DNA of 43,716 nt from Salpingoeca rosetta (taxonomy: Eukaryota; Protista; Choanoflagellata): contig JAWQFM010000030.1 in the NCBI GenBank assembly GCA_033442325.1, forward strand, positions 508,361 to 552,076. Direction: 5' to 3'. Made by a program: the position numbers and the translations under genes. The stretch's first letter is position 1. Each line of letters begins with the position of its first letter. Shown piece after piece: positions 6,877 through 25,530 of this stretch. The notes under the pieces were generated by a model. That model was not told the origin of the DNA. It was given only the letters and a program-made list of their open reading frames with translations, and searched no databases.

Positions 6877-8613
6877 ATGCCGAAGCGCCAGCGGAATGCA
6901 GAGTACAAGGTCGTCCTGGAGACGGGCGACGTCCACATTGTCACAAAAGAAGTGACGACGGGGCTGGTACGTGTTGCTGTTGTTGTTTGTTGTGTGTGTG
7001 TGCGTGTGTGTGTTGTTCGTGTCTACTTTGTGGTGTTGCTCATCGAAACAAGCAATTGACAAGGCCTGCTGCTCAATCACACTCGCACACACACACACAC
7101 ACACACACACACACACACACACACACGCACACATGTGCACTGCTGTGGGACAACAGGACCTTGTGAAAGAAGTGACACACTCCATGGGCATCACTGCACA
7201 CTTTGCCAGGTGTGTGCATGTGTGTGTGCATGTGGGATGAGAAGCGCAAGCCAGTGAGTGCACTGCTTCATTTCAGCACAGTATGCATAACCCGAGCTTC
7301 CTTGTGTCTGCCATTTCTTGTCACTCACCGTCGTACCATTGCCGCCCCCCCCCCTCCTGCACTCGTCACTTGTCTACCGCACCTGTCCTGCGCCTGTCGC
7401 TTGCTCCCCCCCCCCCTCTGCCCTGCCTGCACCCGTCCTTTCCTTGCCATCAATCGCCTCCAGCTTGTTTGGCCTGTTTCGAAAGATGTCCGTGGACACG
7501 CCAAACGAGTGGGTGTACCTCAACCGCCCGCTCTCCCCCTGCACCGTCCACGCCGCCCAGACGCTGCGCCTCTTCCTCAGGGTGTGGATGTGCGATTGCC
7601 TGTGTATGCTTGTGTGTGCTTGTGTATGCTTGTGTATGCTTGTGTGTGTGTGTGTGTCTGTGTGTTGTTTGTTGTGTACGTGTGTGTGTGTTGTTTGTTG
7701 TGTACGTGTGTGTGTGTGTTTGTGTGTCTGTCTGTCTGTATGTGTGCGTCCGTGCGTGGATGTTGTCGTCCCTGCGTGCGCGTGTCTGTGTGTATGTGCG
7801 CGGTGCCTCTACGTCCACTGATACATCACATCACACCACCCTCTGCGTCGCCACATGCAACAGATGCGGTGCAAACCAGACGACGTGCGGCAGCTGTGCG
7901 AGCGCGACCCAACAGCCGCCATCTACTTGCAGGTGTGTGTGTGTGTGTGTGTGTGTGTGTGTGTGTGTGTGTGTGCGTGTGTGTGTGGTGTAAGGTGTCG
8001 TTCATCGTGTTATGTATCCACAAACGTTTCCAATCCACATTTACGCTCACATGTACACATTCACACCTGCACACACACACACACACACACACACACACAC
8101 ACACACACACACACACATAAAACGCACACGCTTGCATCTACATGTACACACGCCATGTCCAGAACCAAATTGCACGCCAGATCTCGACGGGCGGTGTCCC
8201 CGTCAACGACGTGCAGCTCGGAGCCAACATCTGCGCACTGCAGGTGATGATGGCAACGGCACTGGTGATAGTGATGATGATGATGATGATGATGACGTGA
8301 TGATGATGATGATGATGATGATGATGATGACGATGATGATGATGATGATGATGATGATGATGTGTTCTTGTGGAACAAGTGTTGACACTGGGTGGTGCTG
8401 ACAAACGCACGCGCACACGTGTACACGACACACACTCACGTACACGCACACTTTCATATGCAAACACACACTCGCACACATCCACGCGCTCACGGTCACC
8501 TTCCAATGCCATGGTGCCGATGTGCAGATTGTGCTGCATCTGATTGAGGACTACCACCGCCGTCACGTGCGCTGCTCATCCGTTCGCGCAGCAGACATGC
8601 TCTCATACTTCAA
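6877..8613 (+). CDS. N-terminal FERM domain exons (F1 lobe and part of F2), FAK/JAK-type; no natural stop; probably the 5' part of the kinase gene at 17000-25530
   Basis: GT-AG exons 6877-6966, 7157-7209, 7464-7581, 7864-7932, 8163-8243, 8528-8613 join in frame: MPKRQRNAEYKVVLETGDVHIVTKEVTTGLDLVKEVTHSMGITAHFASLFGLFRKMSVDTPNEWVYLNRPLSP..TLRLFLRMRCKPDDVRQLCERDPTAAIYLQNQIARQISTGGVPVNDVQLGANICALQIVLHLIE.. The LFGL / W...N / LR.R..P / D.....YL..Q / ALQ pattern is typical of FERM F1-F2. Confidence 0.75.
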
Positions 8614-8869
8614 GTGCGATGACATGTTTGTGGTGCTACTGCCGGTGATGGTGGCCGTGATGGTGGTGATGATGATGATGGTGGTTGTGGTGGTGGTGAT
8701 GGTGATGATAGTGATGATGCTGCTTGGGGGGGGGGGACTTTTGGCTGGAATCACGTCGACCTGCCTATCTCACTGCACATGCACACATGCACACACACAC
8801 GCACACACACACACACACACACACACACACACACACACACACACACACACACACACACACACAGCGCAT

Positions 8870-22900: not shown

Positions 22901-25530
22901 GAAGTTGCCGTTAAGTTCTTGAAAGTGGACACGTCCGACGAGCAGCAGCAGATGCTGCTGGATGAGGTGCGATCATTGTCGTGGTGGTGTGATGGTTGCA
23001 GTTGTGGTGCTGCTGGTGGTGGTGGTGGGTGTGGTGGTGATGATGGTGGTGGTGATGCGTGTGCGTGTGCGCGTGCGTGGGTGTGCAACCTGCCACATTA
23101 CACACACGCACACACACACACACACATAAATTCACATTCACACACACACACATTCACACACATTCACACACATTCACACACATTCACACACACACACACA
23201 CACACACACACACACACACAACGCCACGGCTCAGGCGAAAGTGATGCACGCACTGCGCCATCCGCATCTCGTGCAGCTGTTTGGCATTTCCGTCGACCAG
23301 CACACATGCATCATCACAGAATACATTCCAATGGGTGCGCAACCCTCCAACCCTGTCTTGTCGCCGCTGCCGATACTCGCATGCTGCAGCTATCGTTGTT
23401 GTTGTTGTTGTTGCTGCTGCTGCTGCTGCTGTTGTTGTTGTTGTTTGTTGAGTTTGGGCGGTTGGAGGGCGTCGTCATCACTGCTTGTTGCCCAACCGCC
23501 ATCTGCCATCTTACGAATCACCTCACACGGTTGCCTCACACCACGCTCCGACCCTCTTGACCCCTCTTGAACCATTGCCACCGCCATTGCCACCGCAGGC
23601 CCGCTGAACAAGTACCTGCAGGCAAACCCGACGATGCCAATCAAGGCGTTGCTCGCATTCTGCCAGCAGGTGTGCAAAGAGAGAGAGAGAGAGAGAGTGT
23701 GTGTGTGTGTGTGTGTGTGTGTGTGTGTGTGTGTGCGTGTGTGTGTGTGTGTGTGAGTGAGTGAGTGAGTGAGTGAGTGAGACAGAGAGTGAGAGAGACA
23801 GAGAGTGAGAGAGACAGAGAGAGTGAGAGAGAGTGAGAGAGAGAGAGTAACAGAGAGTGAGTGAGTGAGTGAGTGAGTGAGAGAGGGAGGGTCTGATTGC
23901 ATGCATGTGCATGATCTTACTTCTTGTGCGTGTTCCCTTACTTTCCATCACACCTCCCCCCCCCTCTCTCTCTTTCTCTCTTTGACCAGATATCGGATGC
24001 AATGGCGTATATGGCGAGCCATAAGTTCGTCCATCGCGATCTCGCAGCGCGCAACGTCCTCGGTAAACACACGCACATGGTGGTGGTGGTGTGATAGGAC
24101 TGACGTGGGCAACGCACGTGCATGTTGTCGTGTATATCCATCTTTTGCGTCTTTCGCTTCTTCCGACACACAAACACAAACACACCAACTCCTACACACA
24201 CATACCCCCCCTCCCACGCACACACACACCACGCACACGCACATTCACACACGCGCGCGCCATCTGTCCAGTTTCGTCCCCGAGCGTGTGTAAGGTTGCA
24301 GACTTTGGGCTGAGTCGTGCCGTTGGCAAAGACAAGGACTACTACCGATCAAAGAACAGGGGCACGTGGCCCATCAAGGTGCGTTGTGACGCATGTATGA
24401 CGTTGTCGTTGTTGGTGGCGTTTGTATATTTCATGTGTGAGAGGTCGTGCTTGCTTTTTTTTTTGCGTTGTTGTGTCGTTGTGTGTGTCTGTATCAATGC
24501 GTGTGTGTGTGTGTGTGTGTGTGTGTGTGTGTCTGTATCAGTGCGTATGTCTGTCTGTCTGTTTGTCTGTCTGCCTGTCAGTCAGTCAGTCTGTCAGTCA
24601 ATCAGTCTGTCTGTCAGTCAGACTGAGTGTGTCCTTGATCACAAATCCAATTGTCCTCTCTCCCCATCAATTGTGTGTGTGTGTGTGCAGTGGTATGCGC
24701 CAGAGAGCCTGTACTATTCTCGCTTCGATTCCAGATCCGACATGTGGTGCGTACGTGAACAGGGAAAGTGTTTGCACACTGGCGTACAAGAGACTGCCGT
24801 TGTTCTTGTCATCGTTGTTGTCGTCGTTGCTGCTGTTGTTGCTTTTGTGAGACGAACCGCTCATGTTCCGTGCATATCTGGTGCACACATGCTCACGTTT
24901 GTGCATCACACCACCACCACCACCACCAATCACTCCTTTTGTCGTGCGCAGGTCCTACGGCGTGACGCTGTGGGAGGTGTTTTCGTACGGGCAGAAGCCG
25001 TACAAAGGTCTCAAGGGCCGCGATGTCATTCTTCTCATCAAGAGGGGCGAACGGCTCGAGAAGCCGGCAGCCGCGCCAGAGGTAATGATTGTGTGTGCGT
25101 CTGTGTGCCTGCGTATTTTCTGTATGTGTGTGTGTGTGTATTTGTGTGTCTGTGTGTGTGTGTGTGTGTATTTGTGTGTTTCTGTATTTGTGTTTGTGTC
25201 TGTGTGTGTGTATTTATGTCTCTGTCTCTGTGTGTCTGTGCCTGCCTGCCTATCTGCCTCTCTGCCTGTCTGCTTGCAACTTTGCCTGTGTAGGTTCCGT
25301 GCATGCACGCATGCATGCTCCTTCCCCTTTCCGAGCACAATGCACACGACACATGAACACACCACCATACCCATCCTCTCAATCACCAACTTACCATCGT
25401 TCCCCTTCTCACACTCCCCTGCCTTCATCAGTGGCTGTACAAGTTGATGCTGTCGTGCTGGGACGTGGATCCAGCGCGCAGGCCCGTGTTCCAGAAAGTG
25501 ACCACCATGCTCAAGCGTGCCATCATTTGA
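17000..25530 (+). CDS. Cytoplasmic tyrosine kinase: end of FERM F3 lobe + SH2 + two tandem Syk/ZAP70-like kinase domains
   Basis: 24 in-phase GT-AG exons: 17000-17069, 17306-17391 ([16 protein letters not shown], cf. FAK AENMADLIDGYCRL); SH2 17609-17756, 18000-18097, 18447-18527 ([43 protein letters not shown]); linker 18765-18824, 19138-19203; kinase 1 19461-19527, 19834-19889, 20251-20379, 20626-20712, 20900-20989, 21212-21343, 21607-21771, 21957-22059 ([37 protein letters not shown]); linker 22408-22481; kinase 2 22736-22966, 23235-23334, 23599-23669, 23990-24062, 24272-24378, 24691-24746, 24952-25081, 25432-25530 ([37 protein letters not shown]), TGA at 25528-25530. Confidence 0.93.
19687..20180. 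repeat. Intronic (CAT)n and (ACTC)n microsatellites flanking the 56-nt VAVK exon
   Basis: (CAT)n 19687-19830 runs directly into the CAG acceptor; (ACTC)n ~19950-20180. Confidence 0.95.

Follow-up and report, generated by a model that had tools for sequence, protein, structure and literature searches.

A stretch of 43,716 nucleotides (nt) from the genome of the choanoflagellate Salpingoeca rosetta (assembly GCA_033442325.1, contig JAWQFM010000030.1, positions 508,361 to 552,076; hereafter the window, numbered from its first letter) appears to carry, on the plus strand between 6877 and 25530, a single gene encoding a cytoplasmic tyrosine kinase with ~1040 residues. The predicted protein has the order FERM (F1-F2-F3)-SH2-kinase-kinase, which is that of the Janus kinases (JAKs), but its kinase domains resemble those of SYK and ZAP-70 and it seems not to be a JAK; we place the probability of this reading as a whole at about 0.85. 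The window, which is eukaryotic, has numerous short introns rich in microsatellites and four runs of N, and the gene lies in it as two same-strand pieces separated by other expressed genes. The exon model, chained from codon usage and splice sites and then curated by hand against a related protein, comprises 31 exons (7 + 24) with AG/GT borders throughout.

The related protein is EP00055_P015803 of Hartaetosiga balthica (P0002 below), a complete open reading frame of 1130 amino acids (aa) from a transcriptome, and it was the best specific match of the first SH2 exon (57% identity) when 1.84 billion representative proteins were searched. The 5′ piece of the S. rosetta gene, 183 aa long, aligns by blastp to P0002 aa 2–162 with 46.6% identity (E 4e-44), and the 3′ piece, with 24 exons, 798 aa and 2397 nt, aligns to aa 255–1033 with 41% identity (626 bits). 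The two pieces are thus colinear with P0002, in the same order and with zero overlap, and the complete reading frame in H. balthica shows that a related species carries this architecture on one mRNA; other choanoflagellate transcriptomes were where the earlier note on this DNA, made from the letters alone, had suggested looking for it. In searches of the whole assembly, which covered 55.4 Mb, the FERM region of P0002 matches this locus alone, and exon 3 is one of just two matches of that region; the FERM N-terminus is therefore single-copy.

Exons 1–7 are transcribed and spliced. RNA and DNA sequencing runs of this organism are numerous. Stranded RNA reads from two runs fit a plus-strand RNA over the 5′ exons, and RNA-like runs are common to both pieces, with exon-only shares of 0.25–0.32 in the 5′ stretch and 0.31–0.32 in the kinase stretch. 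An RNA contig spans 6850–6967, and so covers exon 1 (68% identical to P0002 aa 2–23), and extends at least 69 nt farther upstream; exon 2 contributes 48 letters to the contig joint 6967>7460 and also appears as a loose end, CACACTCCATGGGCATCACTGCACACTTTG, before 7460. The joint 7580>7863 is of the GT..AG type, is carried by 9 and 6 reads and confirms the acceptor of exon 4, and a second GT..AG joint, 8238>8523 (cut +5), is likewise supported by reads. Finally, a contig joint 8614>8883 with 37 letters rightwards takes the RNA contig out of the window at 8919, at the end of exon 7, whose letters finish in ...CTGGCCAATCAG and whose WP aligns with the WPM of P0002. AG/GT borders and stranded RNA together bear out the six 5′ exons that had been read at 6877–8613, to which a seventh is now added.

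The length of this transcript is informative about what lies beyond exon 7. In sequencing run X4 the RNA contig is 3369 nt long, with exon 1 at contig positions 3183–3300, exon 3 at 3014–3134 and the end of exon 7 at 2723, which leaves 2722 nt beyond exon 7. These are unplaced in 8919–12849, where no further GT..AG joints of the contig are listed, and plus-strand RNA depth is absent at 9050–9449 and 9650–10249. The sum of the 3′ piece (2397 nt), the missing codons discussed below (~170 nt) and a 3′ untranslated region of ~155 nt is 2722, and we infer that the contig extends through the kinase exons. Because the pieces are colinear with P0002 and the remainder of the RNA contig fits the length of the kinase exons, it is very likely that they are a single gene, as the earlier note had supposed.

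The evidence for the FERM domain comes largely through P0002. Its N-terminal 320 residues match the solved FRMPD4 FERM structure (PDB) over F1–F2 with E 6.7e-4, whereas the match to Pfam FERM_M over aa 97–222 is weak and below threshold (E 0.042). The named neighbours of the P0002 N-terminus in a protein language model are all FERM proteins (FRMD8, SNX17-type, KRIT1, band 4.1 and FAK; score 0.92), and a FAK cluster stands at rank 13 of the feature neighbours. Single FERM exons of the window gave no Pfam match because they are too short, and six-frame scans of the whole genome with FERM_M, FERM_N_2 and Jak1_Phl, which proceed exon by exon and are insensitive, found nothing in the window. Within the window exons, LFGLFRK, RCKPDD..AAIYLQ and ..ICALQIVLHLIEDY are, in our own reading, presumably the usual F1/F2 landmarks; the putative F3 was assigned by eye, and its last helix appears to resemble the FAK motif quoted in the earlier note. 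The SH2 domain, which starts ten residues after the F3 terminal helix, is a canonical one according to Pfam, with the arginine of YLIRKS retained; the window match comes from a single 49-residue exon, the first of the three, and the SH2 of P0002 spans aa 324–399.

A further member of this FERM-SH2 family was encountered in environmental or fragmented assemblies: P0006 (161 aa; L001:200-685), from contig SXGS01714721.1 of GCA_005801925.1 and from an ENA metagenome contig, contains the end of F3 (the TFATLLDGYAVIR helix) with the start of an SH2 immediately after it, and shares 31% identity with the corresponding region of the window gene (E 2e-11). The short list of proteins closest to the SH2 exon also includes P0005 (701 aa) and P0003 (346 aa), Shark-like proteins with the order SH2-ankyrin repeats-SH2-tyrosine kinase, as would be expected if the SH2 belongs to the Syk/Shark group. 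A word-based protein search, within its length limits, returned P0002 itself alone for the FERM-SH2 and SH2 parts of P0002, nothing for the window kinase-2 exon, and no additional ortholog; the representative protein search with the SH2 exon yielded no 100% self-match, and no protein of the locus was found in protein collections, a result compatible with the expectation of the earlier note that gene callers would fail to report the gene as a whole.

For the exons after the gap, the earlier reading had been a terminal part of F3 followed by an SH2 and two tyrosine kinase domains; the alignment to P0002 agrees with this, and Pfam agrees on the SH2 and the kinases. PK_Tyr_Ser-Thr matches both kinase domains with E down to 6e-28 on partial stretches, and Pfam likewise places two tyrosine kinase domains after the SH2 in P0002. 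JAKs have the order FERM-SH2-pseudokinase-kinase, the first of the two being a regulatory pseudokinase, and it was with this order that the earlier note had compared the gene. A correction is needed on the first kinase domain: in both domains, here and in P0002, the glycine loop, every catalytic motif (DFG included) and a DYY activation loop with tandem tyrosines are kept, so neither is a pseudokinase and both are predicted to be active. Of the solved kinases, SYK scores best with the activation-segment exon of kinase 1 (52 bits), followed by ZAP-70, and SYK and ZAP-70 alone pass E 1e-4 with that of kinase 2; for P0002 kinase 2 the order is SYK (241.6 bits), ZAP-70 (239), TYK2 (218) and FAK (211). 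Each kinase domain is slightly nearer to its positional counterpart in the other species (48% versus 42–44%) than to its own neighbour (46%), which weakly suggests that the kinase domains were duplicated before the two species diverged.

Several observations weigh against the reading of the locus as one gene for a FERM kinase of the SYK type. The FERM call derives from modest statistics and from the ortholog rather than from the window protein, and AlphaFold2 applied to P0002 aa 1–420 without an alignment returned a pLDDT (predicted local distance difference test) of 34.8 and hence an unusable model. About 55 codons are absent, so that an intact reading frame is at most a presumption. RNA mapping over 6 kb (to 12849) revealed no read or contig joining exon 7 to the F3 exon, and the pieces are parted by expressed genes of other kinds, of which two are on the host strand, an odd arrangement unless the assembly is wrong. 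As for the kinases, P0002 kinase 1 scores slightly higher with ABL1 (242) than with SYK (226).

The absent codons correspond to ~55 FERM residues, roughly P0002 aa 200–254, covering the last part of F2 and the opening strands of F3, and they have no counterpart in the window or in the rest of the assembly; they presumably reside in unsequenced DNA. The assembly is defective at two places between the pieces. One is the declared gap, with (GT)n to its left and, to its right, a (CCT)n tract that reaches the acceptor at 16981; because these are its flanks and no open frame crosses it, we place it in an intron or in intergenic sequence. The other is a probable fault that the assembly does not flag, directly after exon 7: in RNA reads whose fit to the window starts at 8952 and goes rightwards, the left side reads AAAGAAGCGCCAGAGGCCTTGCTGTTTTGC, a 30-mer absent from both the window and the whole assembly, and no splice signal exists at 8951/8952 on either strand. 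It is because the RNA letters are foreign to the assembly and a splice signal is lacking that we regard 8919–8951 as faulty; a DNA contig piece also starts at 8952, a start that repeat masking could explain. The foreign letters most likely belong to a minus-strand gene whose exon chain (9289–9197, then 8993 leftwards) runs off the assembly here.

Candidates for the missing exons were considered within the window and set aside. The stretch 8952–9015 on the plus strand (...HTVAQRLLQQQQQLALYSGD) is less likely to be a FERM exon 8, given that no AG precedes it, that its minus frame has a codon score of 12.8 against 5.7 for the best plus frame, that the minus-strand chain continues there with canonical sites and that the plus-strand depth is a microsatellite pile-up. 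At 9060–9330 there is no plus-strand RNA, the phases do not fit and P0002 finds no match, and at 16300–16460 the phases are again unfit and a P0002 match is again missing. Joints and loose ends around 8926–8948, 9513–9564 and 12237–12351 are repeat artefacts from other loci.

How the two pieces came to be separated can be explained in more than one way. That other genes part the FERM halves over ~8 kb had been proposed before, and RNA does identify expressed genes there, in a 7.75-kb block with no Pfam family and no match to P0002. We lean towards the view that the assembly has misplaced this block, because its left border is a fault and its right border a gap, because the other introns are short, and because two of the enclosed genes lie on the host strand. 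A serious competitor, which we consider somewhat less probable, is a true intron of ~8 kb holding at least two or three genes, the assembly order being right and small stretches alone missing: one N-free contig contains both exon 7 and the block, and in the scaffold the block is immediately followed by the kinase part. Against such an intron, all 29 others are ~100–420 nt long (mostly 180–350), two nested genes would share the strand of their host, and RNA sequence foreign to the assembly appears exactly at the left edge of the block, 8952, the right edge being the gap.

Either arrangement is compatible with a single gene. The possibility that there are instead two genes, namely a small FERM-only gene running from 6877 to ~8918 and on into unsequenced DNA, and an SH2-kinase-kinase gene with its own 5′ exons hidden in the gap, draws on the intervening expressed genes, on the want of a joining read in those 6 kb of RNA mapping, and on the presence of both a fault and a gap between the pieces. 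We judge it improbable: the pieces are complementary, non-overlapping halves of one FERM domain and colinear with one ortholog, the 2722 nt of RNA contig past exon 7 suit the length of the kinase part, and the genome has no second copy of the FERM N-terminus. The features of the single gene and of the DNA that interrupts it are listed below.

Table 1. Exons of the putative FERM-SH2-kinase-kinase gene and interruptions of the locus (positions in the window; P0002, Hartaetosiga balthica protein)
Feature	Position	Strand	Basis
Exon 1, start codon (MPKRQRNAEYKVVLETGDVHIVTKEVTTGL), FERM F1 start	6877–6966	+	First in-frame ATG after a stop, GT donor
Exon 2, FERM F1	7157–7209	+	AG/GT borders; within masked repeat area
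Exon 3, FERM F1 (LFGLFRKMS...TLRLFLR)	7464–7581	+	P0002 aa 34–84, E 4e-7
Exon 4, F1/F2 junction (MRCKPDDVRQLCERDPTAAIYLQ)	7864–7932	+	P0002 aa 83–105
Exon 5, FERM F2	8163–8243	+	AG/GT borders
Exon 6, FERM F2 (IVLHLIEDYHRRHVRCSS...MLSYF)	8528–8613	+	P0002 aa 132–161, 53% identity; RNA contig departs at 8614
Exon 7, FERM F2 (ASRHIGIERHILALWPI)	8865–8918	+	Phase fits exon 6, AG/GT borders
Probable unflagged assembly fault	8919–8951		33 letters, (GCT)n(GGT)n microsatellite
Intervening block, other expressed genes, outside the kinase coding sequence	8952–16704		RNA; 7.75 kb
Declared assembly gap	16705–16804		Left flank (GT)n, right flank (CCT)n into acceptor at 16981; no open frame crosses
Putative FERM F3 exon, begins CCCATTGCGTTTGATCAG	16982–17069	+	CAG acceptor after (CCT)n tract, GTAAGA donor; blastp alignment to P0002 starts here, aa 255
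Putative last F3 helix and linker to SH2	17306–17391	+	AG/GT borders, phase fits; linker length equals that of P0002
SH2 domain, three exons (17609–17756, 18000–18097, 18447–18527)	17609–18527	+	Pfam SH2, E 1.6e-5; tblastn to P0002 aa 310–418
Two predicted linker exons (18765–18824, 19138–19203)	18765–19203	+	Codon-usage/splice chain alone, weak likeness to P0002 linker RPQPKRTLDDIK
Kinase domain 1, eight exons (19461–19527, 19834–19889, 20251–20379, 20626–20712, 20900–20989, 21212–21343, 21607–21771, 21957–22059)	19461–22059	+	Pfam PK_Tyr_Ser-Thr
Predicted inter-kinase linker exon	22408–22481	+	Codon-usage/splice chain
Kinase domain 2 and stop (TGA, 25528–25530), eight exons (22736–22966, 23235–23334, 23599–23669, 23990–24062, 24272–24378, 24691–24746, 24952–25081, 25432–25530)	22736–25530	+	Pfam PK_Tyr_Ser-Thr

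The genes within the block merit a brief description. The minus-strand gene at 8952–11400 is expressed, with a probable start ATG at 11313, CT..AC introns 10595>10862, 9696>9927 and 9289>9613 and strand-specific depth; its product is acidic and of low complexity, belongs to no Pfam family, and has 3′ exons that break off at 8952, where the RNA goes on with letters that the genome assembly does not contain. In run X4 the RNA contig of this gene (1383 nt) and the 3369-nt contig described above have the identical mean depth of 366.1, which may reflect the way in which the run or its contigs were produced. Divergent from it, across a shared region of ~100 bp, is a plus-strand gene at 11450–12650, also expressed (RNA contig pieces 11690–11881 and 12134–12611), the product of which is rich in Ser, Gln and Asp and again matches no Pfam family. 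Farther on, a series of open stretches on the plus strand at ~14400–16460, with putative exons at ~14.4–16.1 kb, would encode coiled-coil-looking, heptad-like peptides (VLNAISKEGQLATSQDVLSVRTALEGLQRRINDVE, SLLSAIEEELNAFVAQLRTS and LTSLQSLQSDVLSALKAMESN) and a hydrophobic C-terminal stretch before a stop at 16459, with no Pfam match, and may specify a tail-anchored coiled-coil protein.

It is also worth drawing attention to the in-frame triplet repeats (ATC)n, (CCT)n and (GTT/GCT)n at 19678–19835, 16805–16950 and 14100–14350, in introns and intergenic DNA. They yield stop-free poly-Ile, poly-Pro or poly-Val/Gln frames and misled the codon-usage exon chain into a false poly-Ile exon; automatic gene models are therefore at risk in this genome. 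For the kinase locus itself, the ~55 missing codons and the unflagged fault make it likely that gene models and protein catalogues are broken, and the locus thus serves as a warning to users of the reference assembly.

If the domains behave as they do in the families to which they belong, the FERM-SH2 unit would, as in FAK and JAK, bind the enzyme to phosphotyrosine and to membrane proteins at their cytoplasmic tails. Once phosphorylated on their DYY loops, perhaps each by the other, both kinase domains would be switched on and could phosphorylate substrates, unlike the situation in JAKs, where a regulatory pseudokinase comes first. The conservation of both kinases in an apparently active form sets this family apart from the JAKs and bears on the origin of pseudokinase regulation, and since S. 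rosetta permits knock-outs, the function of the gene is testable.

We hesitate to go much further in evolutionary terms. One could speculate that a FERM-SH2-kinase-kinase protein conserved across craspedid choanoflagellates, with kinase domains for which orthology by position is weakly suggested, survives as a sister lineage to the ancestor from which animal JAKs arose, in which case the domain order would predate animals and JH2 would descend from an active Syk-like domain, but we regard this as unlikely; otherwise the same architecture would have been put together on two occasions.

Among known systems the Janus kinases (JAK1-3, TYK2 and Hopscotch), which bind box1/box2 of cytokine receptors and phosphorylate STAT, are the obvious point of reference, being alike in the FERM-SH2-kinase-kinase order and in the tandem tyrosines of the activation loop. 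They differ in the first kinase domain, which is no pseudokinase here, and in that the kinases here are SYK/ZAP-70-like and the SH2 is canonical by Pfam. In tests that are weak for a distant relative, the JAK-type families FERM_F1, FERM_F2 and Jak1_Phl gave no match to P0002 at E <=0.1, and SH2_1 reached 18 bits against a cut-off of 27; Jak1_Phl has no match in the genome. A place for the C-terminal kinase in the JAK clade is contradicted as well, as judged by scores and not by a tree of our own. With the pseudokinase absent, SYK and ZAP-70 nearest and no JAK FERM or SH2 family recovered, the proposed kinship with JAKs is supported no further than domain order. That the gene is nonetheless a true pre-metazoan JAK whose pseudokinase is still active is very improbable, for although the domain order and the short FERM-SH2 linker are those of JAKs, TYK2 comes next after SYK and ZAP-70 for P0002 kinase 2 (218 versus 241 bits) and the SH2 of JAKs is itself closest to that of SYK/ZAP-70 (PMC3670263), both kinases match SYK/ZAP-70 best (or ABL, for one of them), no JAK FERM_F1, FERM_F2, Jak1_Phl or SH2_1 match passes, the first kinase lacks pseudokinase changes, and a published tree places the Monosiga brevicollis kinase with Syk (PMC3670263, PMC4342544).

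SYK and ZAP-70, by comparison, are the best solved relatives of the kinase domains and share the activation loop form xDxxYYxAxxxGKWPxKWYAPE, although SYK has two SH2 domains, one kinase and no FERM, where the window gene has a FERM, one SH2 and two kinases. FAK shares an N-terminal FERM on a tyrosine kinase but is without an SH2 and has one kinase domain and a FAT domain, and the FAK FERM families of Pfam gave no match.

The closest counterparts are therefore to be found among the choanoflagellates themselves. UTK05mod of M. brevicollis, a species without a JAK according to a 2026 survey (PMC13203501), is described as having a FERM, an SH2 and two kinase domains with a Syk-like kinase (Suga 2012 in PMC3670263; legend to figure 4 of PMC4342544). 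Going by that description, with which alone our comparison was made, it agrees with the present gene in domain order, in grouping its kinase with Syk and not JAK, and in belonging to a choanoflagellate; it differs in species and in that the S. rosetta gene is split by assembly faults. The architecture has thus already been published for M. brevicollis, and the S. rosetta gene, for which a literature search found no describing paper, is a further member and not a new kind; with a JAK-like order outside animals on record, the surprise is small. What is added is that at least two further choanoflagellates are now seen to have the family, one of them with a complete transcript. Judged from the protein alignments, the S. 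rosetta gene is an ortholog within a choanoflagellate family that includes this H. balthica transcript, the ortholog by sequence, and, by its description, UTK05mod. P0002 has a C-terminal tail of ~100 residues that S. rosetta lacks, its stop coming right after kinase 2, and ~20 more residues in F2, but the two are otherwise colinear over their full length, 41–47% identical, and share the same domains and the same intact motifs.

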